From Octopus sinensis (taxonomy: Eukaryota), in contig NC_043017.1 in the NCBI RefSeq assembly GCF_006345805.1, positions 12,896,001 through 12,960,000 on the forward strand: 64,000 nt of DNA. The letters run 5' to 3'. This document shows positions 4,207 to 61,061 of the stretch, piece after piece. A program made the translations under genes and the position numbers. Under the pieces are notes generated by a model, which had not been told where the DNA came from, did no database searches, and worked only from the letters and a program-made list of their open reading frames with translations. Positions within the stretch are counted from its first letter, which is position 1. Each line of letters begins with the position of its first letter.

Positions 4207-6457
4207 GTGGCACATAAAAAGCACCTTTCAAGTGTTGGGTCTCATGGAGGTAATGTGGCCAATTCTGGTGTTGTGTAATTAGCAACCGTGCAGGTGGAAC
4301 ATAAAAAGCACCTTTCAAGCATTGGGCCTCATGGAGTAATGTGGCCAATGCTGGTGTTGTGTAACTAGCAACCGTGCAGGTGGAACATAAAAAGCACCTT
4401 TTGAGTGTTGGGTCTCATGGAGGTAATGTGGCCAATTCTGGTGCTGTGTAACTAGCAACCGTGCAGGTGGAACATAAAAAGCACCTTTCAAGTGTTGGGC
4501 CTCATGGAGATAATGTGGCCAATGCTGGTGCTGTGTAACTAGCAACCGTGCAGGTGGAACATAAAAAGCACCTTTCAGTGTTGGGCCTCATGGAGGTAAT
4601 GTGGCCAATGCTGGTGCTGTGTAACTAGCAACCGTGCAGGTGGAACATAAAAAGCACCTTTTGAGTGTTGGGTCTCATGGAGGTAATGTGGCCAATTCTG
4701 GTGCTGTGTAACTAGCAACCGTGCAGGTGGAACATAAAAAGCACCTTTCAAGCATTGGGCCTCATGGAGGTAATGTGGCCAATGCTGGTGCTGTGTAACT
4801 AGCAACCGTGCAGGTGGAACATAAAAACCACCTTTTGAGTGTTGGGTCTCATGGAGGTAATGTGGCCAATTCTGGTGCTGTGTAACTAGCAACCGTGCAG
4901 GTGGAACATAAAAAGCACCTTTCAAGCATTGGGCCTCATGGAGGTAATGTGGCCAATGCTGGTGCTGTGTAACTAGCAACCGTGCAGGTGGAACATAAAA
5001 AGCACCTTTCAAGCATTGGGCCTCATGGAGGGAATGTGGCCAATTCTGGTGCTGTGTAACTAGCAACCGTGCAGGTGGCACATAAAAAGCACCTTTTGAG
5101 TGTTGGGTCTCGTGGAGGTAATGTGGCCAATTCTGGGGCTGTGTAACTACCAACCGTGCAGGTGGAACATAAAAAGCACCTTTTGAGTGTTGGGTCTCGT
5201 GGAGGTAATGTGGCCAATTCTGGTGCTGTGTAACTAGCAACCATGCAGGTGGAACATAAAAAGCACCTTTTGAGTGTTGGGTCTCGTGGAGGTAATGTGG
5301 CCAATTCTGGTGTTGTGTAACTAGCAACCGTGCAGGTGGACATAAAAAGCACCTTTTGAGTGTTGGTCTCGTGGAGGTAATGTGGCCAATTCTGGTGTTG
5401 TGTAACTAGCAACCATGCAGGTGGAACATAAAAAGCACCTTTTGAGTGTTGGGTCTCGTGGAGGTAATGTGGCCATTCTGGTGCTGTGTAACTAGCAACC
5501 GTGCAGGTGGAACATAAAAAGCACCTTTTGAGTGTTGGGTCTCGTGGAGGTAATGTGGCCAATTCTGGTGTTGTGTAACTAGCAACCATGCAGGTGGAAC
5601 ATAAAAAGCACCTTTTGAGTGTGGGTCTCGTGGAGGTAATGTGGCCAATTCTGGTGCTGTGTAACTAGCAACCATGCAGGTGGAACATAAAAAGCACTTT
5701 TGAGTGTTGGGTCTCGTGGAGGTAATGTGGCCAATTCTGGTGTTGTGTAACTAGCAACCATGCAGGTGGAACATAAAAAGCACCTTTTGAGTGTTGGGTC
5801 TCGTGGAGGTAATGTGGCCAATTCTGGTGCTGTGTAACTAGCAACCATGCAGGTGGAACATAAAAAGCACCTTTTGAGTGTTGGGTCTCGTGGAGGTAAT
5901 GTGGCCAATTCTGGTGTTGTGTAACTAGCAACCATGCAGGTGGAACATAAAAAGCACCTTTTGAGTGTTGGGTCTCGTGGAGGTAATGTGGCCAATTCTG
6001 GTGTTGTGTAACTAGCAACCATGCAGGTGGAACATAAAAAGCACCTTTTGAGTGTTGGGTCTCGTGGAGGTAATGTGGCCAATTCTGGTGCTGTGTAACT
6101 AGCAACCATGCAGGTGGAACATAAAAAGCACCTTTTGAGTGTTGGGTCTCGTGGAGGTAATGTGGCCAATTCTGGTGTTGTGTAACTAGCAACCATGCAG
6201 GTGAACATAAAAAGCACCTTTTGAGTGTTGGGTCTCGTGGAGGTAATGTGGCCAATTCTGGTGCTGTGTAACTAGCAACCATGCAGGTGGAACATAAAAA
6301 GCACCTTTTGAGTGTTGGGTCTCGTGGAGGTAATGTGGCCAATTCTGGTGCTGTGTAACTAGCAACCATGCAGGTGGAACATAAAAAGCACCTTTTGAGT
6401 GTTGGGTCTCGTGGAGGTAATGTGGCCAATTCTGGTGCTGTGTAACTAGCAACCGTG
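4207..6457. repeat. 87-bp minisatellite, about 26 units
   Basis: Unit GTGGAACATAAAAAGCACCTTTTGAGTGTTGGGTCTCGTGGAGGTAATGTGGCCAATTCTGGTGCTGTGTAACTAGCAACCATGCAG; unit starts at 4207, 4294, 4380, 4467, 4554 and onward. Confidence 0.97.
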
Positions 6458-6753
6458 CCATTATAATCTGGCACCAGTGTCATCACAGGAGTTGCTACAA
6501 CGAGGTTACAGACAGCATTAAAAACTTATGAAATTAGCAAAGAAACTGTAACAATCATTAATGATGTGAACAATCATTGATCTCTGTCACAAATTAGGGT
6601 GTCTCCATTGTTAATGTGACCTTTGACCTAATGTTACTGAGGTCATAAGTTCAAACTACTAAAAGTGAATCTGCATCATCAGTGATTTTTAGACAAACTA
6701 CCAAACGATGTTTCTTTCACTATATTTCTATCCATCAACCTTTGCCTATATAT

Positions 6754-17184: not shown

Positions 17185-17583
17185 TTAACAGTCCCCTTCC
17201 ATCGTAACAGCAGGTTGTGATTGCACATAAAATGGTCCCTGTTGCTGATACAAACGCAGTTTCAGGTAATTCGGTGAACCGAACATCTCCTCGGTGCAGC
17301 TGTTCTGTAGCAAAGCCTCGACTACTTTGTACTTCAGTCGCTTGTCTTCTGATGACGCTTCGGTCGATCGGTCTAGCAGGTACTCAATGAAAGTCGGGTG
17401 GTGTGCCATCAGTTCTAAAGCCCAGCGCTGGTTGGCTAACGACACGTATATGCTTTTGGAGGCCAGTCGGATGTTAGGGAATGGTTGTTGGCCGATCGAG
17501 AAGATTAAATTAAAAGGGTTGCTGGAGATTAAGCTGAACCAATGCTGTGTGAGGGCAAGCATCTCATCATTTTGGTCTTCAGC
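17185..17583 (-). CDS. PSMD5: PSMD5 terminal coding exon 8 (399 nt incl. [19 protein letters not shown]...VTMEGDC*)
   Basis: Acceptor ttacttttag|GCT; phase 0; contains the diagnostic C-terminal GPFYV...EG motif. Confidence 0.96.
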   Translation of the reverse strand, partial: AEDQNDEMLALTQHWFSLISSNPFNLIFSIGQQPFPNIRLASKSIYVSLANQRWALELMAHHPTFIEYLLDRSTEASSEDKRLKYKVVEALLQNSCTEEMFGSPNYLKLRLYQQQGPFYVQSQPAVTMEGDC

Positions 17584-19512: not shown

Positions 19513-22500
19513 TCATTATCATCATTTAACATCCGCTCTCCATGCTGGCATGAGTTGGACGGTTTGACTGAGGACTGGTGAGCCAGATGGCCGCACCAGG
19601 TTCCAATCTCATCTGGCAGAGTTTCTACAGCTGGATGCCCTTCCTAACGCCAACCACTCCGAGAGTGTAGTGCGTGCTTTTACATGCCACCGGCACAAGA
19701 ACCAGTCAGGCGGTACTGGCAGCAACCACAGCACAGGAGCCAGCTCGAATGTTTTTTTCACATGCCACCAGCACAAGTGCCAGTAAGGCGACATTGGTAA
19801 CAATCACGCTCGAATGGTGCTTTTTATGTACCACTGGCACGGGAGCCAGTCAGTGGCCCTGGCAACGATCATGCTTGGATGGTGCTCTTGATGTTCCACT
19901 AGTACAGATGCCAGTCAGGCAGCGCTGTCATCGGCCGCATCCGTGAATTTGATTTCGATTTCATTTGCCTCAACAGGTCTTTGCAAGCAGAGTTTAGTGT
20001 CCAATGAAAGAAAGGTACGCACAAGAGGGCTGATTACACCACTAGCATAGGCCATGGGTTATGGTTTCACTGGCTTGCCGGGTCTTCTCAAGCACAGCAT
20101 ATTTCCAAAGGTCTCGGTCACTAGTCATTGCCTCGGTGAAGCCTAATGTTCGAAGGTCATGCTTCATCACCTCATCTCAGGTCTTTCTGGGTCTACCTCT
20201 TCCACAGGTTCCCTCAACCGCTAGGGTGTGACACTTTTTCACACAGCTATCCTCATCCATTCTCACCACATGAACATACCAACGCAGTCGTCTCTCTTGC
20301 ACACCGCATCTGATGCTTCTTAGGCCCAACTTTTCTCTCAAGGCACTTACACTATCGTGTATGCATACTGATATTATACATCCAGCGGAACATACTGGCT
20401 TCATTCCTTGCAAGCTTACGCATGTCCTCAGCAGTCACAGCCCATGTTTCACTGCCATGTAGCATAACTGTTCATACACATGCATCATACAGTCTACCTT
20501 TTACTCTGAGGCCCTTTGTCACCAGCAGAGGCAGGAACTCTCTGAAGTTTGCCCAGGCTGTTCTTATTCTAGCAGCTACACTTTCAGAGCATCCACCCCC
20601 GCTACTGACTTGGTCACCTAGGTAACAGAAGCTATCAACTACTTCTAGTTCTGGACTCAGAACGTAAAAATGGACAAAATGCTGCTAAGCATTTTGCCCA
20701 GCATATTAATGGTTCTGCCAACTCACCACCTTAATAGAAATATTAATAATAATAACCTTTGCTACCACTGCTATTACTGCAGCTATATTTGAATCACCCC
20801 AAATTTCCTTATTCTAAAAGAAAACGATTAACCAAAAGTTGTATTCCACTGTGAGCGAAACCCCCTTATCTGAATATTAATTTATAGGATATGGTAGGAA
20901 GTGAAATGGTGTAGAACAAATAGACAGTACCGTCAGCTGGAGTATTGACGCGAATGCAGAAAGTGCTCGGACTTTCACATCTTCAGGACAATTCTGAATT
21001 GTCTGACCAACATTCTTCATAGCTTCATCCATCTTTGAGCCTGAAAAATTGAGACAGAAATACATGGAATGATCTGGGACAAATTTAACCCTTTAAGCAT
21101 TTAAATCGATCATATCCAGCCTAAATATTCTACTTGTTTTATGTTCAATCCAGCCAGATCAGGTCTCTCACGTGTACCCTACAATGTCCTTCTAAAAATA
21201 AACAGTGACATCATCAAAATCTCAAAGCTATAAGATAAAGCAGGATTAATTCAAAATATGAGTAAGTGTTACATTTGAGAGAGTAATTTAAATAGTGAAG
21301 GATTAAAAATAAATAATGAAATATGAAAAGTAAATAAAAATGATAAAAATGTTATTATTAATGAGTTTTGACAATCCAATTAAACTAGTGAGGGCTTAGT
21401 GCCACAACCAGCAGCATCAAGACCATACTACTGGTTGTTTATCAATATTCCAAGATTGTGGAACTGTTAACTGATTGATGTAAGTAAATATAATCTTCTG
21501 GCTCCCTTCACAGCTACTGGTAGTGCCAATCACAGTTTGAACTCTGAAGTGTCAGTGGTCTTGTGAAGTTGGTGCTAGTGATAGCCTGGGCTTGGTAGTG
21601 GTGGACTAGGTACTACCTGTAGTAGAATTGGTTAAATACCACTGCCGGTTGTATGGGCTCAGTGCTACCAATGGTAGTCTGGACTCGATGTTGGAGGCAG
21701 TTGTGAGGGCTCAGTTAGGGTTAGGGTTAGGGAACCGAGTAACCTGCATTATGAGTCCTAGGAGCTCAAGGAAAAAAAACTTTCTGTAAAGGGGTTAGTG
21801 ATGAAGTGGAGACAACACAGGATCAAGGAAACCCGTCAGTCTTATTGAGAACATGACAACTTCTCTAGTGCTGGTGCAATGAGGAAATGTACCCAGTACA
21901 CTGTGGAGTGGTTGGTGACTGGAAGGGCATCCAGCTGTAGAAGCATGCCAAAAATGAAGGAAACAAGTGAGATGTGGTCCCTTGACCAGTCAAGAAGAGC
22001 AATACTTATAAATAACTGATAAGGACAGACAACCTGTCTAACCCAAACCAATATAAAAATCAAGCATAAAATTATGGTGATGATGGTAATGATGATGATG
22101 ACAATGGGGATGATAATTAAATCAATTTTTACCGTATTTCTTTAGAATCAGCTTCCCGTTTTTAGTGATAGCAATTTGTGCAATAGTTTCAATGCCAATG
22201 GTTCTTAATGTCATGTCTGAAGAATTCAAACTAGACAGAACTTTAGACAAGAAGTGCTGGTACTTAGAGCAGATTTCATTGGGTCGATGTCGTGCTACAC
22301 TGCCAAAAAAGGTAATCAGTCCTACAAGAAAAAATTAAAATAAAAAAGAAAAAAGGTAATCAGTCCTACAAGAAAAAATTAAAATAAAAAAGAAAAAAGG
22401 TAATCAGTCCTACAAGAAAAAATTAAAATAAAAAAGGTATTTTCAAAAAGACAGGACAGAACAGAACAAAATATATATTTAAAAAAACAAACGATGCTAA

Positions 22501-22733
22501 ATTATTAAAAAATTTCTACAAGAGTGATGGAGGTAAAACAGCTTCATGGGGAAAATAATAAGGTAAAGGAATGGCTTTGTGGTTCAGAAGCTTGATTTGT
22601 AACCCAAAGGGTTACAGGTTCAGTCCCACTGTGTGGCACCTAGAGCAAGTATCTCTTACTATAGCCCCGGGACAACCTAAACCTTGTGAATGAATTTGGT
22701 AGACAGAAACTGTATGGAACATGGAAGTTAGTC

Positions 22734-22777
<44 letters not shown>

Positions 22778-22783
22778 ATATAT

Positions 22784-22814
<31 letters not shown>

Positions 22815-25800
22815 CACACATACACACACATACATATACGTGTGTGTATAGTTCGTTTCCTCCCACCACCACTTGACAACCAGTGTTGGTTTGTTTACAT
22901 TCATGTAAATAAAACCAACTGACCAACCAACCAACCAATTTCTCCAGTCACTATTCCTGGGAGGGGGTGTGGGGGTAGAGTCAGCAGGTACCTCAGCTGT
23001 CGTGCGATGTAGAAGTGTCACTGTCATGCAAGCAGTGTCCATTGCTTCCAATCTTCCTGGATAACACGTCTGGTCATGAGACGCAGCCATACGAAATCCA
23101 CCTCAGCAAATTCCATCTAACCCATGCAGACACAGAAAAGTGGACGTCAAAAGCAATGGCAGTGATGATGAGCACATCAGTTCACATCAGCTAGGGAATG
23201 GATGAACGTAGAGAAGCATGACACAGATTCCATACACTAATGACAGCAGCAACATGCAATCGTTTAAAGCCGCATAAACTAAATGTCAATAACCAGCAAT
23301 ACAAAACAAGGTGGTGGTGGTGGTGGTGGTGATGGTAGGGGAGGTGCTATGTAATTTGAAAAGGAAAAAAAAAAAAAACATTAAATAAAAGCAACAACAA
23401 CAGAGAGAGAAAATACAATTTAAATGTTCAAATAAGCAAGTGACAAAGAAATTGCCATCATTAGAAACGATAATAACAGAAGACAGAAAATTTTAGTAAA
23501 AGACTTTCATTTTGTCATCAACCCACAAAAAGGAGACTTTGGTTTAAAACCGAGAAATTAATGGAATTATATAGAGAGACAACCGAAAACCTACTTCCAC
23601 AACTATTTCAGATGGTTTATAGAATACTGTAAAACTGATATTATTATTCGTATTCTACACTCTGAGTTCAAATTCCGCCGAGGTCAATTTTGCCTTTCAT
23701 CCTTTTTTAAGGGCAATAAAATAAACACCACTTGAACACTGGGGTTGATGTAATCAACAAGTCCCTTCCCCCAAAATTTCAGGCCTTGTGCCTTTTGTAG
23801 AAAGGATTATTGGTGGCACGTAAAAAGCGCCATCCGATCGTGGCCGTTTGCCAGCCTCGCCTGGACCCCATGCCGGTGTTACATAAAAAGTGCCATCCGA
23901 TCGTGGCCGTTTGCCAGACTCGTCTGGCACCTGTGCCATTGGCACGTAAAAAGCACCCACTACACTCATGGAGTGGTTGGCGTTAGGAAGGGCATCCAGC
24001 CGTAGAAACATTGCCAGATCAAACTGGGCCTGGTGCAGCCTTCTGGCTTCCCAGACCCCAGTTGAACCGTCCAACCCATGCTAGCATGGAAAGCGGACGC
24101 TAAACGATAATGATGATGATGATGATGATGATGAAAACGGCAAGCTGGGCAAAATACTTAGCAGTATTTCATCCATCAGTTATGATTAGAAAGGATTATT
24201 ATCTTTATTATTATTATTATTGAGTGAGAGAGCAGTGCATGCCATCAAAGTGACACTGGAGTAAAATATACGAAGCCCAGTATACCCATCATGACTACCC
24301 ATCTGATAAGGGTACACTAGGCACATGCATCACAACCATATGTGCGCAACATGGGTGATCTCATATCAAGACAAACAGCGCATGACCTTGCAGGTGGGGC
24401 CCAGTTAGAATTTTCTTCTGGTTGAGTAACACATCCTGCTCAAAAGGTCCCTGAATAAGGGTTATTTAAGGATGTTGAACGAACCACCCATGTTTCCAAA
24501 GGTGAATTATCCAAACCTCCAAGAATTCCTTTCAACACACGGCTATGATGCTCCCCACTACTTCTGCTCGTGATCAGAGATGCACATGTCGTCAGCCATT
24601 AAGGGACATGCTCAACTGGTTACGGTCAAACAACTGACAAGCAAATCTGTGGTATTGAGCAGAATATTATTATTATTATTATCATTATTATTATTATTAA
24701 TAGTAGTATTATTAAGGCAGAACCATTAGCAGGCTGGACCAAATGCTCTTTACATTCTGAGTTCAAATTTCGCCAAGGTCAACTTTGCCTTTCATCCTTT
24801 CAGGTTCGACGAAATAAGTACCAGTTGAGCACTGGGGTCGATGTAATGGACTTCTCCTTCCCCTGAAATTGCTGGCCTTGTGCCAAAATTTGAAACCATT
24901 ATTAATTATTATTATTATTATTATTATTACTATTTTAATTAATGTATCTTGTGTATACAAAAAATGTATGACTGCTGCTGTTAAGTTTACAGCCCTACAG
25001 AGATTACCATCATCCAGTCAGATTCCACTAACCTGGTTAAGCTGACCGCTAACTAGTATTACTAGTTATAATTTTCTCTCTCTCTCTCTCTCTTTTTTTT
25101 TCTCTCTTTATTCTCTATTTTGTCTTTTCCTTCTCCCCCTTTCTCTTGTTTCTTAGTCCCTCTTTATCTTTCTCTGCCAATCGTTTTCTTTCCACTTCCT
25201 CTCAAAATACTTATAAAATGCCTTCAGTTCTACCCAACTCTTGAAACTGGTTCTCTAACGTAATGCAACAAAGTGTTTCCCTGATGAACCATTGTGGTTA
25301 AACATCCAACACAAAGTTCCAAACAACCACAATGGTGAAACACATGTAGGAACTATTATCATAATTAAGGCGGCGAGCTGGCAGAATCGTTAGCACGTTA
25401 GTCGAAATGCTTAGCGGTATTTCGTCTGCCGCTACGTTCTGAGTTCAAATTCCGCCGAGGTCGACTTTGCCTTTCATCCTTTCAGGGTCGATTAAATAAG
25501 AACCAGTTACGCACTGGGATCGATGTAATCAACTTAATACCTATGTCTGTCCTTGTTTGTCCCCTCTGTGTTTAGTCCCTTGTGGGTAATAAAGAAATAG
25601 GTTCTGGTACTAAGGCCTCACTAGTTTAATTAGATTATCAAAACTCATTAATAATAACATTTTATCATTTTTATTTACTTTTCATATTTCATTATTTATT
25701 TTTAATCCTTCACTATTTACATTATTCTGTCAAATGTAACACTTAAGTACCAGTTACGCACTGGGGTCGATGTAATCGACTTAATCCGTTTGTCTGTCCT

Positions 25801-28800
25801 TGTTTGTCCCCTCTGTGTGTAGCCCCTTGTGGGTAGTAAAGAAACAGGAACTATTATCATTAACTTGTGTTTATCATAATTTTTCATTTCAAACAAAATG
25901 CTCAGAGGCATTTTTACAGGTTTTACATTCAAATTCCACTAAGGTTAACTTTTCCTTTCGTCCTTTTGTAGTCAATAAAACAAGTACCAGTTGAGCACTG
26001 GGGATCAACATAATCAACTAGCCCTCTTCTCCAAAATGTCAAGCCTTGTGCCCATTGTGGAAAGGATTCATCATCATCATCGTTTAACATCTGCTTTCCA
26101 TGCTGGCATGGATTGGACAGTTTGACTGAGGACTGGCAAGCCAAGGAGGCTGCACCAGGCTCCAATCTGATCTGGCAAGGTTTCTACAGCTGGATACCCT
26201 TCTGAACACCAACCACTGGGTACTTTTTATGCGACACTAGCACGGGAGCCAGTCAGGGGGCACTGGCATCGACCACGTTCGGATGGTGATTATAATTATT
26301 ATTATTATTATTATTACTATTTTAATAATGTATCTTGTGTATACAAAAAATGTATGACTGCTGCTGTTAAGTTTACAGCCCTACAGAGATTACCATCATC
26401 CAGTCAGATTCCACTAACCTGGTTAAGCTGACCGCTAACTAGTATTACTAGTTATAATTTTCTCTCTCTCTCTCTCTCTTTTTTTTTCTCTCTTTATTCT
26501 CTATTTTGTCTTTTCCCTCTCCCCCTTTCTCTTGTTTCTTAGTCCCTCTTTATCTTTCTCTGCCAATCGTTTTCTTTCCACTTCCCTCTCAAAATACTTA
26601 TAAAATGCCTTCAGTTCTACCCAACTCTTGAAACTGGTTCTCTAACGTAATGCAACAAAGTGTTTCCCTGATGAACCATTGTGGTTAAACATCCAACACA
26701 AAGTTCCAAACAACCACAATGGTGAAACACATGTAGGAACTATTATCATAATTAAGGCGGCGAGCTGGCAGAATCGTTAGCACGTTAGTCGAAATGCTTA
26801 GCGGTATTTCGTCTGCCGCTACGTTCTGAGTTCAAATTCCGCCGAGGTCGACTTTGCCTTTCATCCTTTCAGGGTCGATTAAATAAGAACCAGTTACGCA
26901 CTGGGATCGATGTAATCAACTTAATACCTATGTCTGTCCTTGTTTGTCCCCTCTGTGTTTAGTCCCTTGTGGGTAATAAAGAAATAGGTTCTGGTACTAA
27001 GGCCTCACTAGTTTAATTAGATTATCAAAACTCATTAATAATAACATTTTATCATTTTTATTTACTTTTCATATTTCATTATTTATTTTTAATCCTTCAC
27101 TATTTACATTATTCTGTCAAATGTAACACTTAAGTACCAGTTACGCACTGGGGTCGATGTAATCGACTTAATCCGTTTGTCTGTCCTTGTTTGTCCCCTC
27201 TGTGTGTAGCCCCTTGTGGGTAGTAAAGAAACAGGAACTATTATCATTAACTTGTGTTTATCATAATTTTTCATTTCAAACAAAATGCTCAGAGGCATTT
27301 TTACAGGTTTTACATTCAAATTCCACTAAGGTTAACTTTTCCTTTCGTCCTTTTGTAGTCAATAAAACAAGTACCAGTTGAGCACTGGGGATCAACATAA
27401 TCAACTAGCCCTCTTCTCCAAAATGTCAAGCCTTGTGCCCATTGTGGAAAGGATTCATCATTATCATCGTTTAACATCTGCTTTCCATGCTGGCATGGAT
27501 TGGACAGTTTGACTGAGGACTGGCAAGCCAAGGAGGCTGCACCAGGCTCCAATCTGATCTGGCAAGGTTTCTACAGCTGGATACCCTTCTGAACACCAAC
27601 CACTGGGTACTTTTTATGCGACACTGGCACGGGAGCCAGTCAGGGGGCACTGGCATCGACCACGTTCGGATGGTGATTATAATTATTATTATTATTAAGG
27701 TGGCAAGCTGCCAGAATTGTTAACTTCTCAGACAAAATCCTTAGAAGCAGTTTTTCCAGCTCTTTAAATTGTGAGTTTAATTGCCACTGAGGTCAACTTT
27801 ACTTTTCAGGGTCAATAAAATAAGTACTAGTTAAGCACTGGAGCCAATATAACCGACTTCCCTCTGCCCACAAAAAGTTGTTGGCCTTGTACCAAAATCA
27901 GAAACATTATCATTATTAATATATATACATATATATAGGGCGCAGGAGTGGCTGTGTGGTAAGTAGCTTGTTTACCAACCACATGGTACCGGGTTCAGTC
28001 CCACTACGTGGCACCTTGGGCATGTGTCTTCTACTAAAGCCTCGGGCCGACCAAAGCCTTGTGAGTTGTTTTGGTAGACGGAAACTGAAAGAAGCCCGTC
28101 GTATATATGTATATATATGCGTGCTTGTGTGTCTGTGTTTCTCCCCCTAGCATTGCTTGACAACCGATGCTGGTGTGTTTATGTCCCCGTTACTTAGCGG
28201 TTTGGCAAAAGAGACCGATAGAATAAGTACTGGGCTTACAAAAAGAATAAGTCCCGGGGTCGAGTTGCTCGATTAAAGGCAGTGCTCCAGCATGGCCGCA
28301 GTCAAATGACTGAATCAAGTAAAAGAGTAAAAGAGTATATACACTGTAAAGTGATTAGCATTAAGAAGAGCATCCAGCTAAAGGAACCAAGCCAAATTAG
28401 ACCTGGTGCAGTTCTTTGGCTGCTAGTTCTGGCCAAACCGTCCAACCCATGCCAGCATGGAAAACAGGTGTTAAAGGATGATGATGATGATTATGATACT
28501 TATATAATGAAATAATGACAGATCTTTTATCTTTTACTTCTTTCAGTCATTAGACTGTGGCCATGCTGGGGCACCGTCTTGAGGAATTTCAGTTGAAGTA
28601 ATGGAATCCTCTTTAATACCCTTAGTGTAATTTGCATTATTAATCATCTTCACACACAGGTATTTCACAACAGTGCTGACTTTTAACCCTTTCATTATCA
28701 TATATCTGTTGAAACACATGGCTTTTGTTTTGGTTAATTTTGAAAATAATGGAGAATTTAGGAAAATGTAAAAAGCACTTTCTGAACGGGATTGATGTCA

Positions 28801-29159
28801 GGCCCGCCTGACTGGCTTTTGTGTCAGTGGCACGTAAAAAGCACCCACTACTCTCTCAGAGTGGTTGGCATTAGGAAGGGCATCCAGCTGTAGAAACCTG
28901 GCCAGATCAGATTAGAGCATGGTGCAGCCGCTGGCTCTCCAGACTTCAGTGAAACCATTCAACCCATGCCAGCATGGAAAACAGATATTAAATGATGATA
29001 ATTGACCCCAGTACCTATCGATTCTATTTTTAAGTCTAGTACTTAAACTTTCGGTCTCTTTTGCCAAACCAATAAGTTACAGGGACATAAACACAACAAC
29101 ACTGGTTCTCAAGTGGTGGTGGGAGGCAAACAAAGAGAGAAAGACACACACACACACAT

Positions 29160-29191
<32 letters not shown>

Positions 29192-32100
29192 CAAGCATGT
29201 AAATAATAACACAAATGGGCTGAGGTTCACTACAGCTGTTTCAGGCATGTTTTTTTTATTGATGACCAAATCAATTACATCTTGTAAACAAACTGTTTTC
29301 TTCAGATGAATTAAAATTAAAATAAAATTTAACATTTAAGATTTTTGACACAAAGAATATATATTTCTTTACTACCCACAAGGGGCTAAGCATAGAGAGG
29401 ACAAACAAGGACAGACAAACGGATTAAGTCGATTACATCGGCCCCAGTACGTAACTGGTACTTAATTTATCGACCCCGAAAGGATGAAAGGCAAAGTCGA
29501 CCTCAGCGGAATTTGAACTCAGAACGTAGCAACGGGCGAAATACCGTGAAGCACTTTGCCCAGCGTGCTAACGTCTCTGCCAGCTCGCCGCCTTAAGAAT
29601 ATAGAATACACATCTCTCATCTCAGTGCTGGTTATGACAGGCTTCTTTCAATTTCCATCTACCAAATCCACCGACAAGGTTTTGGTCGGCCTGCGGCACT
29701 AGTAGAAGACACTTGCCTAAGGTGCCATGCAGTGGGAATGAACCCAGAACCATATGGTCGGGAAGCAAAACTCCTTACCACACAGCCACGCCTGTGCATA
29801 ATAGACAGATGTTGAAGAACATAGAAAAATCTCATTGACAATATTTAAATGATGCCTAACCTGGCTGCAAGAGTTCAAGTAAAACATCCGAGTCAGCTTT
29901 AATCAAGAGAGTCTCGAGACAATCAAGGACTTTGTGTTCGGTCAGCCAAGTAAATCCATGGTCACTTGTGGTCAAGTTTGTTAGTAGTTCTACGCAGTTC
30001 ATCTTTGCCAGTACATCCGCACTATCACCATAGAGTTCGTTAAGAAGATTTTCCAACAGACCAGATCCAATCACCAATGACAAATTTCGGGCTGATGAAT
30101 TGCCAATATTAACGAGCAACTAGAAAACAATTTGGATGAATATATTAGTAATTAGATAAGACTCAGTGTGTGTGTGTGTGTGTGTATGTATGTATAGACA
30201 TATACATGTGTGTACATATACATATATATCCTTTAAGTTCATTTACAGTAAACTTTTTTTAGTTGGATTCCATCTGCAAAAGCAGTTTTATGAGATCATA
30301 CCAAGCTGTGCTGATATAACACAGGGCTGAACACAGACAGGACAAATTACAAAGTAGAGCTTTTCCTTTTGGGGAGAAAAAAAAAAGTGGGGTAGGTTTT
30401 CAATCAAAAGGGATCATGAAAAGGAAAGAAAAAAAAACGATCAATAGGAATCGTGTATGACAGAAATGTCATGATATAAAGTGTAAAGGGGGAAGCAGAT
30501 AAGGTTTATCTGAGGAAAGAAAAGCCTACGGAAAAGACCATGGTAACCTCGGTCAATAATGTCACATGTTAACACATTTATTTGCAAGTAAGTAACTCTG
30601 TTTTAAATTTTTCCGGGTTCATAGGATTATGCTCAAGGTGGCTTCGTCATTCATATGTAGCATCCTTGCTACATTCACCCATCTTTTTTTGAAACATTCG
30701 CTAGACAAAACTTGCCTCTCTACTCTCATTCATGAATATTTTAATGTATCACTATGCGGGTTTCCACAAATCACATGTTTTTAGTGACCATAGTCTGCGT
30801 TCATGGGATGATTACAGCCTAATCTGTAATACCTATTTCTTTATTACCCACAAGGGGCTAAACACAGAGGGGACAAACTAGGACAGACATAGGTATTAAG
30901 TCGATTACATCGACTCCAGTGCGTAACTGGTACTTAATTTATCGACCCCGAAAGGATGAAAGGCAAAGTCGACCTCGGCGGAATTTGAACTCACAACGTA
31001 ACGACAGACGAAATACGGCTACGCATTTCACCTGGCGTGCTAACGTTTCTGCCAGCTCGCCGCCCTATAATCTGTAATACCCATGTACATCAGGTGAGTC
31101 TTTGTGCGGGTGTTTGTGTTTGTAAAGGACCAATTTGGTAAAACACGGTGCTAAACTACAAAAATCTAAGAACCACTGAACTACATTATCATATCATCTT
31201 TACTTATTTCAGATACAAGGTCATCATTCAAGAGAGATTTAGCTGTTCTCTCTAGCAAGTTAAGCGACCACATAAAGACACCTTTGTTTGATAATAATCA
31301 TAAGTTTTATCCAACATACACACCCACACCCACTAATGATATAGTCTTCTACCCTGCAATCAGTCTCTCAATCAAGTCTTTGTATTAAAGGTAATAAAAA
31401 TATAACAATCCTTTAATTATAGACGTTCATTATAGGAGTGTTGCCGTGGCCTAGTTTACAGACTCCACAATGGCAGAAAATATATTGAAATTATCATGAT
31501 CATCATTATAGTCGTTACTATTATTATTGTGAGAGAGCAGCACACACCATCAAAGTGGCATGGGGTACAAATATACGCAGCCCCATACACCCATCATGAC
31601 TACTCATCTGATAAGAATAAACCTTGCACCATTGCATCACAGCTATGTTTGTGTGACATGGTGACCTCATATCAAGATAAACAGCACATGACTTTACAGG
31701 TGAAGCCAAATTAGAATTTTCATCGGTGTTTCCACCGAGGTTAACTTTGCCTTTCGTGTTTTTTGGGATTCAATAAAATAAGTACTAGTTGAACAATGGA
31801 ATAGATGGAATCAACTTAACCACTCCCTTGAAATTGCTGGCCTTGTGCCAAAACTTGAAACATTATTATTATTATTATTATTATTATTAAACTCTGCTTG
31901 CGAAGACCTGTGGACATTAACCCTTTAGCATTCAGATTACCCTGTCAAATGTAAAGCCTATTTAATTACATTGTTTTAGATTAATTGTACAGCATCTTGT
32001 AACTGAGATTTTGATGATGACCCTGTTTATTTTTAGAATGACTTTGTAGGGTAGGTGTGAGAGGTCAGAGCTGGCTGGTTTGAGCATAAAACAGGAAGAC

Positions 32101-33631: not shown

Positions 33632-35772
33632 ATCATCATCCTGATTATCATTCAATTTAAAAACTACCCAGAATTTGCCAGTCTCCGAAAAAATGACATA
33701 ATCCATTTACTTTCAACAACTGCAATATTTATAAAATGGAAACAATATTATTATTATTATTATTATTGAGGCCTTGTGCTTCCAGTAGAAAGAATTATTA
33801 TTATTATTATTATTAATCCATCAACAAAGAACAGTGAATGTATGTGTTGCTAGGGATGCCTGGGTTTCAAATATGAAGAGTAAACAATAAAAATGAATAA
33901 TTGGTTAATGTATTATTTTAGTTAATTATTCAGGAACAAACTGTACAAACAGTGAAATAACGACAGCCATCTTTTACATAGACATGAATGAACTGATAAT
34001 GAATACAAATTTTATACCAGATAGATAGATAGACAGATGGACAGACAGACAGAGACAGACAGACAGACAGACAGACGGACAGATGGACAAACAGACAGGC
34101 AGACAGACAGACAGATAGGCAGACAGACATATAGATAGACAGATGGACAGACAAACAGAGATAGACAAACAGACAGGCAGATGGACAAACAGACAGGCAG
34201 ACAGATAGGCAGACAGAGAGACAGGCAGAGAGACAGGCAGGCAGACAGAGAGACAGGCAGGCAGATAGACAGACAGACAGGCAGATAGACAGACAGACAT
34301 ATAGATAGACAGATGGACAGACAGAGATAGACAGACAGGCAGACGGACAGATGGACAAACAGACAGGCAGACAGATAGGCAGACAGACAGGCAGACAGAT
34401 AGGCAGACAGACACCCAGACAGACAGGCAGATAGACAGACAGACATATAGACAGACAAATTGATAGACAGACAGATAGACGGAGCGATAGATGGACAGAT
34501 AGATGGACGGATGGACAGATGAATGGGCAGGTAGACAGCTGGATAGATAATGATGGAACTAAACAAATAAAACCACTTGGGCTAGATATGTAAAATATAC
34601 ATATAATATGATAAATGTGAAAACTAATTTGTGTGCTGTAGTGTCACACTTTGACCCCCTCTCTCACTTCCTCATGCTGGGGTGAGAGTAATAGTAGGCA
34701 TAGAGACGGTAAGGGTGGTGGCGAAGGCAGAAAGAGAGAAAGAAGAAGAGAGGGAGAGAAAGAAAGACAAAGAAATTTAGGAGAGCTGATGATGTTTTAT
34801 TAAAAGTAGTGTTGATGACAACAATAGGAGTAATAATGAGAGAGAGAGAGAGAGAGAGAGAGTAGGTATGTGAGAGAAAGAGGGAGATGTACAACTTTGC
34901 TGGACAGAAACTCCTGTGGCCAGCATACTGAACACTATAATTTTTGTTTTATTTTTTGCTTTCTTTAAAATATATATATATATAATATATATATATATAA
35001 TATATATATATATATTATATATATATATGTAAAAGTAAAAAAATATATACAAACTGAGACAAGAACATGAAACACCTAGAAGATGACACAAGAAACACAG
35101 GACGGGACATTCGAAGCCCTCAATCATCAGTCAAGAACCGGATCATCTTCGCAATTTCGGCTGATCAATCTTGAGATTGCTCCGATCCGGGCAGCCCCCA
35201 AGGGAAATCTAAGCCAAGCGCATTAGATCCCTTGGAAGAAAGCCTCGAATGTATACAACACAAGGACGGAAAACGGACGATATATAAATCCATGGGGTAA
35301 TTATAATCAAAGTAAGCAACAAGAATATCTTCGGTAATTTGGTACGATCGTTTCATGCTCCATCATTTTATTAAACATTGTAAGTATTACATCAGTTTTA
35401 AAATGTTGAGCAATCTTCAGTCGTATGCACCCACAAGGCTTGTTCAGCCCAAAGCTGTAGCAGCAGACAGTTGTACCAGGTACCATTCAGACTGGACCCA
35501 GAACCGTGTGGTTGGGAAGTGAACTTCTTACGATGCTATAACACCTATACCTATATATATATATATGTTAAATGATGATGATAAAATACAGTAAAATAAA
35601 TTAAATAAAATGTCCTCAGCCGCAAGGTTGAAACTCACCTCATAAACTCTGAATCGAACCACGTCATTTGTCTTTATAATGGAGTCCAACACTGCGTGTA
35701 GATCACTATGGAAGAGTTGCTGTAGACTTTCGGGACAGTCTCCTATAACAGTGAACCACAATATATACAATG

Positions 35773-60355: not shown

Positions 60356-61061
60356 TTATAAATACCTGGCATAGTTTCGGTTGTAGTAGCACAGATTTCC
60401 CCTACCTGGCATAGTTTCGGTTGTAGTAGCACAGATTTCCGTCGATTTCCGTAAAAAACTTTTATTTTTTTACATAAGTAATGAGAGCGAAAGAGACTAA
60501 GAGGAAGCGATTTTATGACGAGAAGGTTTCTCTTTGAAGTCGGCCTGTGTGTGTTTGATGGGGTGTGGGAGACAGACAGTATGTTGTGTAAGTGAAGTGC
60601 TTCTGTTAGTGTGTGCGAAGAGACAGACATACATATACACATACACCGAGTAAAAAATTACGATGAATCGGCCATACATACATACATACATACACACACA
60701 CACATACATAGATACATACACACACACATACATGCATACATACATATACACATACACCGAGTAAAAAATCAGTTATCTCTCTCTTTCACACATTACTCTC
60801 TCTGTCTCTTCGCACACACTAACAGAAGCACTTCACTTACACAACATACTGTCTGTCTCCCACACCCCATCAAACACACACAGGCCGACTTCAAAGAGAA
60901 ACCTTCTCGTCATAAAATCGCTTCCTCTTGGTCTCTTTCGCTCTCATTACTTATGTAAAAAAATAAAAGTTTTTTACGGAAATCGACGGAAATCTGAGCT
61001 ACGACATGCGAAACTTCGCCAAATACCTTATAAACAGTCTCTCGTGAGACTGTTTATAAGG
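60356..61061. mobile_element. Fold-back (MITE-like) element with 196-bp inverted arms
   Basis: Arms 60432-60627 and 60801-60996 match at 195 of 196 positions; a diverged outer inverted repeat extends to about 60356/61030. Confidence 0.7.

Follow-up and report, generated by a model that had tools for sequence, protein, structure and literature searches.

A perfect threefold repeat of the acceptor module at the intron 5/exon 6 junction of PSMD5 in Octopus sinensis, probably a tolerated product of slippage

The minisatellite in intron 7 of human F7 is built from 37-bp units, the first of which spans the exon 7/intron 7 boundary, and is polymorphic with 5–9 copies (PMC1557585). The authentic donor is there followed by four to eight identical pseudo-donors; only the exon-adjacent site is used physiologically, the others being functional when tested, and similar boundary-spanning minisatellites are found in IFI6 (the 6-16 gene), CBS, LMNB2 and PDGF (PMC1557585). 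Here we describe a repeat at the acceptor side of an intron, in the PSMD5 gene of Octopus sinensis, where the intron 5/exon 6 junction is present three times in perfect tandem. The gene lies on the minus strand of the stretch analysed, called the window from here on, which comprises 64,000 nucleotides (nt) of contig NC_043017.1 (assembly GCF_006345805.1, positions 12,896,001 to 12,960,000); all O. sinensis coordinates refer to the window. The array is probably a slippage-derived tandem triplication that has been tolerated, its two upstream copies having been absorbed into intron 5.

The array occupies positions 22305–22436 with a period of 44, 3.0 copies, 100% matches and no indels (score 264 in Tandem Repeats Finder, TRF), and direct reading gave a consistent sequence on both strands. 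The 10-nt sequence AAAAAAGGTA at 22305 is repeated at 22430, which extends the whole array to 22305–22439 (minus strand). Read along this strand, each 44-bp unit is composed of 27 nt of intron end, closing with CUUUUUUAUUUUAAUUUUUUCUUGUAG, and of the opening 17 nt of exon 6, GACUGAUUACCUUUUUU. Three identical acceptors are generated by this arrangement, with exon starts at 22409 (A1), 22365 (A2) and 22321 (A3), and their modules are the same from −27 to +17. Unit 1 (22393–22436), the most upstream in the transcript, holds pseudo-acceptor A1 and is made up of intron-like sequence (22436–22410), the AG (22411–22410) and an intronised exon fragment (22409–22393). Unit 2 (22349–22392), with pseudo-acceptor A2, contains intron-like sequence (22392–22366), a UAG (22368–22366) that constitutes the in-frame stop for A1, and a second intronised fragment (22365–22349). 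Unit 3 (22305–22348) is proximal to the exon and carries the functional acceptor A3, with the intron end at 22348–22322, a UAG (22324–22322) that is the stop for A2, and the genuine first 17 nt of exon 6 at 22321–22305. The unit thus crosses the exon/intron border and the reiterated sites reproduce the authentic one, in three copies with 100% identity. In the 2.72-Gb O. sinensis assembly the 221-bp array region occurs a single time, which rules out a dispersed-repeat origin of the unit, and no second allele or haplotig of the array is present. An earlier note on this DNA, made from the letters alone, had named the gene, the exon number, the 44-bp unit and the three acceptor positions; TRF, the readings of both strands and the spliced model bear this out, and the anatomical description and the consequences that it derived in silico proved correct in every particular.

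At 22516–22522 (minus strand), 106 nt upstream of the first array acceptor and preceded by a pyrimidine-rich stretch, there is a fourth CUUGUAG heptamer. It was created by a C-to-A change specific to O. sinensis (A at 22517 on the minus strand; C in O. vulgaris and O. bimaculoides) and could be a further cryptic acceptor.

The identity of the gene is well established. Four minus-strand open reading frames (ORFs) match, in order, the Pfam family PF10508 (proteasome non-ATPase 26S subunit) over profile positions 183–494, with 46 bits for exon 5, 44.7 for exon 6 and 120.8 for exon 8 (cut-off 23), the match of exon 7 being weak (14.7 bits against the same cut-off of 23). At the junction under study the profile is unbroken, since the exon 5 part (positions 183–265) ends at 265 and the exon 6 part (265–324) starts at 265. 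The joined exons of the window are 100% identical to XP_029649309.1, the O. sinensis PSMD5 protein of 506 amino acids (aa). An exhaustive search of GT/AG combinations reproducing this protein returned one exact solution with 8 coding exons on the minus strand (59398–59220, 41494–41350, 37679–37544, 35742–35639, 30119–29861, 22321–22133, 21040–20931 and 17583–17185), which places the whole coding region at 17185–59398. Coding exon 5 (29861–30119) measures 259 nt and coding exon 6 (22133–22321) 189 nt, with phase 1 at both ends; they are separated by intron 5 (22322–29860; 7,539 nt), which begins at the 5′ splice site CAG/GUUAGG and houses the two intronised units. The gene is single-copy, all eight exon matches falling at one locus of the O. 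sinensis genome, and no retrocopies that could serve as fossils of spliced PSMD5 mRNA were found in that genome. The role of the protein as PSMD5/S5b/Hsm3, which binds Rpt1 and helps in 19S base assembly, is assumed here by orthology only. Skipping of exon 6 would delete 63 residues in frame.

Several lines of evidence point to 22321 as the productive acceptor. It is the only one of the three that keeps the frame and gives the 506-aa protein, and it is the one used by the annotations of both O. sinensis and O. vulgaris, whose 506-aa products are identical at 505 of 506 positions. Residues P274, G275, F279, G281 and P288, which flank the junction on both sides, do not vary when the octopus proteins are aligned with those of Argonauta, a hemichordate, a millipede and four insects; the codon of G275 is the one split between exons 5 and 6. 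Five sites of the coding sequence distinguish it from that of O. vulgaris, 4 of them synonymous and 1 non-synonymous. Against O. bimaculoides, synonymous changes affect 40 codons and non-synonymous ones 22; nearby introns of O. sinensis and O. vulgaris diverge by ~2.3% (104 mismatches in 4,527 nt). This pattern of substitution indicates that PSMD5 is still under purifying selection and, because it is, productive splicing to 22321 must occur.

The two upstream acceptors behave very differently when the spliced model is translated in silico. Splicing to either 22409 or 22365 gives a product of 288 aa that ends at the TAG of the next copy, and two exon junctions follow this premature stop, the last of them at a distance of 343 nt for 22409 and 299 nt for 22365. 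Both positions exceed the distance of ~50 nt before the last junction beyond which a stop is taken to mark unproductive splicing, and the frame consequences asserted in the earlier note were reproduced in full. No 288-aa isoform is annotated among the database proteins of either species. A collection of 5.8 billion proteins was also queried with a 199-aa sequence that included the poison tail and with 104 aa centred on the normal junction, so as to detect products of RNA-derived contigs; neither query returned anything from O. sinensis or O. vulgaris, with no 288-aa protein and no fragment crossing the junction, and the only hit was one O. bimaculoides database entry. For O. vulgaris, the gene models were built from transcript alignments together with protein and ab initio evidence and extended with PASA splice variants, and the longer ones are credited to Iso-Seq (PMC10700109).

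Comparison of the orthologous PSMD5 loci of O. vulgaris (GCA_951406725.2), O. bimaculoides and Argonauta hians revealed where the array stands in the phylogeny. The O. vulgaris locus (L003), which comes from another individual and was assembled by an independent group from its own data, carries three perfect copies at 35725, 35769 and 35813, spaced by 44 nt (18-mer seen 3 times, 0.01 expected by chance). Exactly one copy, identical to the units of the other two species, is found in O. bimaculoides (L004, 39886), and A. hians shows a single acceptor of unrelated sequence (L002, ~8553); the extra acceptors are thus absent from both species outside the close pair. When the three Octopus sequences are aligned, a clean insertion of exactly 88 bp is seen in O. 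sinensis and O. vulgaris relative to O. bimaculoides, with flanks that align well. Short perfect tandem repeats in T-rich regions are places where assemblers can miscount, and an assembly or polishing artefact with a true sequence of one unit had to be considered for this reason. It is very unlikely, to the point of being negligible, because the independent O. vulgaris assembly, made by another group from different data (PMC10700109), shows the same three copies in the same register, and O. bimaculoides has exactly one copy between matching flanks. The O. bimaculoides locus left coding exon 2 (145 nt) unmatched, which fits the shorter RefSeq model of 446 aa and probably reflects an assembly gap, not a real loss.

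The single-copy state of O. bimaculoides also sheds light on the origin of the array. There, two copies of ACCTTTTTT lie 44 nt from each other: one starts the intronic U-tract and the other constitutes the Thr-Phe-Phe codons of exon 6 (ACC TTT TTT). The repeat period equals the distance between these two 9-mers, so slipped misalignment or unequal exchange between them explains the unit boundaries exactly, and we infer that one of these processes made the array. The microhomology with slippage that the earlier note had suggested from the 10-nt AAAAAAGGTA at both array ends agrees with this, the ACCTTTTTT pair of the single-copy state fitting slippage as well. In the ancestor, the exonic ACCTTTTTT would have duplicated the start of the U-tract lying 44 nt upstream; misalignment between the 9-mers would then have added one unit and later a second, after the split from O. 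bimaculoides and before that between O. sinensis and O. vulgaris. These splits have been dated to ~34 million years (My) and ~2.5 My ago, respectively (PMC10700109). Since O. vulgaris has three copies and O. bimaculoides one, the array would have arisen between ~34 and 2.5 My ago, the simplest history being that two units were added in that span. It has remained unchanged in both lineages, with no disabling mutation over at least 2.5 My; among the six units of the two species no difference is seen, against ~3 expected from local neutral divergence (P ~0.05).

A closer inspection of the unit suggests that it contains everything an acceptor needs. Branch-point candidates were located by scanning for yUnAy, and their assignment comes from this pattern, not from mapping. 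In the 60 nt that precede the first acceptor, two matches were obtained and both belong to the unit: UUUAU, its A at 19 nt from the G, and UUAAU, at 13 nt. The next match further upstream is ~95 nt from the AG. Both downstream units (2 and 3) show in addition a CUGAU 38 nt before their AG, supplied by the intronised exon fragment, as the earlier note had stated for this branch-like motif. For the functional acceptor the candidates therefore span 22335–22360 (minus strand): CUGAU (A 22360, 38 nt), UUUAU (A 22341, 19 nt) and UUAAU (A 22335, 13 nt), and these candidates are found again 44 and 88 nt further upstream. An AG is placed ~35 nt upstream of the (first) acceptor in both O. bimaculoides and O. 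vulgaris, which leaves an AG-free zone of about the size of the unit. Such a zone normally holds the branch point. Because the yUnAy candidates are inside the unit and the AG-free zone is about as large, the native branch point was likely copied along with each unit, and the exon-proximal acceptor would have a candidate of its own. Each AG would thus possess a complete module, and the spliceosome need not reach past the native branch point; the contrary proposal in the earlier note, that it would have to skip the one acceptor endowed with that branch point, does not hold, as the candidates sit in the repeated unit and every copy has them.

No RNA structure masking the upstream acceptors was predicted in a 271-nt region around the array, which folds worse than its shuffles (z = +2.2), and inverted repeats near the array are limited to a TA/CA microsatellite; structural masking and a double-stranded editing substrate were rejected on these two grounds. 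Recursive splicing or a mini-intron between units was rejected by eye, there being no usable GU after the AG (AG/GACUGA). The sole GU of the unit (CUU/GUAGGA) would be a poor donor, and removal of the 44-nt span would not restore the frame, as also judged by eye.

These features are brought together by the reading of a tolerated slippage product as follows. Each unit would amount to a whole acceptor module with its likely branch point, U-tract and UAG, so the exon-proximal copy at 22321 would retain all it needs and stay the productive acceptor, and the two upstream copies, together with their 17-nt exon fragments, would have become intron 5 sequence. The choice between modules would be settled when U2AF and U2 assemble. 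In this scenario the exon-proximal module would win, as it alone has genuine exon sequence behind it and is the nearest to the exon 6 donor, in terms of exon definition. Each upstream AG would meet another U-tract after only 17 nt, and a U2 complex assembled on the next unit would overlap it; indeed, a distance of only 6 nt separates the AG at 22367–22366 from the branch A of CUGAU at 22360. This preference for the exon-proximal copy draws on the exon-definition model and on older experiments with duplicated sites. Any splicing to 22409 or 22365 would lead to a transcript with a premature stop, probably degraded, and such use would amount to noise or a modest dosage leak, with no sign of regulation.

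Several points weigh against this reading. The classical rule is that splicing uses whichever AG comes first downstream of the branch point, and this favours an upstream copy. Loss of PSMD5 is tolerated in yeast and in some tumours, so a large loss of productive PSMD5 mRNA might be tolerated as well. Gene-model pipelines prefer a long ORF and often discard candidates for nonsense-mediated decay (NMD), and for this reason the missing 288-aa isoform is weak evidence that the upstream sites are silent; the usage of the acceptors is deduced here from annotation, protein conservation and persistence. The complete identity of the six units is a faint indication of constraint or homogenisation, neither of which would be anticipated under strict neutrality; the excess could come from constraint on the acceptors, since the single O. 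bimaculoides unit is identical too, from homogenisation or from chance. Finally, some experiments with duplicated sites favoured the upstream copy (described in PMC1557585), and a junction duplication in human BRCA1 yielded a transcript that kept the entire duplicated region (PMC11839443). The upstream BRCA1 copy had 1.6 kb of exon behind it, unlike the octopus units (PMC11839443). Since a duplicated upstream acceptor was usable there with a long exon behind it, some leaky use of the octopus acceptors may occur.

The main rival to the tolerated-slippage reading is a substantial constitutive leakage into unproductive transcripts. Here the three modules would compete, a sizeable part of splicing would go to 22409 or 22365 and be degraded, and the PSMD5 dose would be permanently lowered in the vulgaris/sinensis lineage. 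The identity of the modules from −27 to +17, each with its own branch-point candidates, the lack of predicted structure over the upstream sites, the stops that either upstream use would place ~300 nt or more before the last junction, and the duplicated-site and BRCA1 precedents are all consistent with such a competition. They are countered by the lack of a truncated isoform in the annotations of both species, that of O. vulgaris having drawn on transcript and long-read data (PMC10700109), by the purifying selection still acting on the protein, and by the mere 17 nt of exon sequence that the upstream sites have before the next U-tract; persistence for at least 2.5 My free of disabling mutations fits harmless sites as well as useful ones. 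On balance this leakage is unlikely, yet it deserves to be kept in mind. That the two extra acceptors are used substantially and form a drain by unproductive splicing, acquired through slippage, on the sole PSMD5 gene of the vulgaris/sinensis lineage we regard as distinctly improbable. Were it true, how strong the drain is would be governed by the unit count, with possible variation in strength among tissues or populations, and the locus would be a natural 3′ splice-site counterpart of the F7 minisatellite, but a leaking one.

Regulated unproductive splicing coupled to NMD is usually deeply conserved and tied to a regulator. The earlier note had gone further than leakage and proposed a poison-acceptor switch tunable as a variable number tandem repeat (VNTR), by which regulation or copy number would set the level of this proteasome base chaperone. 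The architecture deduced in silico, with identical acceptors of which two are unproductive, is compatible with such a device, as is the marginal excess of unit identity (0 differences against ~3 expected). The copy number is 3 in both genomes that carry the array (two genomes, one locus in the O. sinensis assembly); exactly three perfect copies in assemblies of species ~2.5 My apart, with no alternative allele or haplotig in O. sinensis, give tunability no support. A switch function is at odds with the lineage-specific nature of the extra acceptors, which are missing from O. bimaculoides and Argonauta when regulated poison elements are typically conserved, and with the lack of an annotated 288-aa isoform and of a regulatory RNA structure. 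The proposal of a VNTR-tunable switch is thus unsupported and in part contradicted, and we consider a regulated or tunable element at this site highly unlikely.

A role of the U-rich units as an intronic splicing element was also weighed, in which a longer polypyrimidine tract or additional sites for proteins that bind U-tracts would alter the inclusion of exon 6. Directly upstream of the functional acceptor, the units do provide two extra 27-nt U-rich tracts with UCUU motifs, and exon 6 is symmetrical (189 nt, phase 1 to 1), so that skipping it would stay in frame. Nothing specific speaks for this role, however, and the database proteins included no isoform without exon 6; its probability is close to nil.

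Other repeats were observed in the window. Within PSMD5 intron 5, positions 24934–27705 hold a tandem duplication of ~1,386 bp with copies that are 99–100% identical and start 1386–1387 nt apart. In BLAST comparisons both copies match one place of the O. vulgaris locus (L003, 32170–32582), and because of this the duplication would be specific to O. sinensis or a duplication in the assembly. A large minisatellite with an 87-bp unit extends over 4207–6458 (26 copies, 95% matches, TRF score 3951). The second perfect tandem repeat of the window (60363–60440; 40 bp × 2, 100%) is placed ~1 kb upstream of the PSMD5 start codon; no exact copy of the 40-mer was present in the O. vulgaris locus, where the sequence included 2 kb ahead of the start codon. 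A dispersed repeat of ~410 bp, with 87–96% identity between copies, is found many times in the PSMD5 introns of both O. sinensis and O. vulgaris (for instance near 38.0–38.4 kb, 42.2–42.6 kb and 45.7–46.1 kb in the window, with related ORF fragments throughout it) and looks like an element of the short interspersed nuclear element (SINE) type.

Returning to the array, its consequence for octopus biology is likely small. Its value lies in a clean natural experiment, in which two assembled species offer three identical and complete acceptor modules 44 nt apart and a one-copy outgroup serves for comparison; it bears on the relative weight of exon context and 5′-to-3′ order among identical acceptors in an invertebrate with long introns. 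A search of the full-text literature, incomplete as the prime sign in 3′ splice site cannot be searched for, retrieved the donor-side work on F7 and a single BRCA1 case; it gave no natural acceptor-side equivalent and no systematic study of one.

Among the systems that were described, the partial duplication of intron 9/exon 10 in BRCA1 resembles the octopus locus in that an acceptor and the start of an exon were copied and that retention of the copy in the mRNA leads to a premature stop (PMC11839443). It differs in being a private pathogenic allele of 2 kb, in which the upstream acceptor is backed by 1.6 kb of exon and the duplicated region stays in the mRNA (PMC11839443). The octopus units, by contrast, carry only 17 nt of exon and are shared by the assemblies of two species, whose productive protein is conserved. 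Tandem NAGNAG acceptors share with the array the presence of closely spaced alternative AGs at one intron end; they are spaced by 3 nt, rely on a common branch point and U-tract and change one codon in frame (PMC2668829). The octopus AGs are separate complete modules whose alternatives shift the frame, and as they are spaced 44 nt, not 3 nt, apart, the array is not a NAGNAG. With NMD poison exons or sites it has in common that choosing the alternative site would bring in a premature stop far ahead of the last junction, but the octopus element is specific to one lineage, lacks the conservation outside close relatives that is one usual hallmark of the regulated members of that class, and its truncated isoform is predicted in silico only. 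In intron gain by tandem duplication, too, a short duplication bearing splice signals is absorbed and the mature mRNA is unchanged, with the difference that a new intron is then made from a duplicated AGGT (PMC3265369, PMC4974935); in octopus, an existing intron gained 88 nt without any new intron being formed, and exon sequence of 2 × 17 nt has turned intronic.

The closest described analogue appears to be the F7 intron 7 minisatellite, of which the octopus array would be the acceptor-side mirror image. In both, the repeat unit spans an exon/intron boundary and the authentic splice site is joined by identical copies of itself. The donors of F7 are repeated downstream into the intron, whereas in octopus the module of branch point, U-tract and AG is repeated upstream into it; F7 is polymorphic with 5–9 copies and the octopus array has 3 in both assemblies. 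Which site is used was shown by experiment in F7, and in octopus annotation and protein conservation point to the exon-adjacent one.

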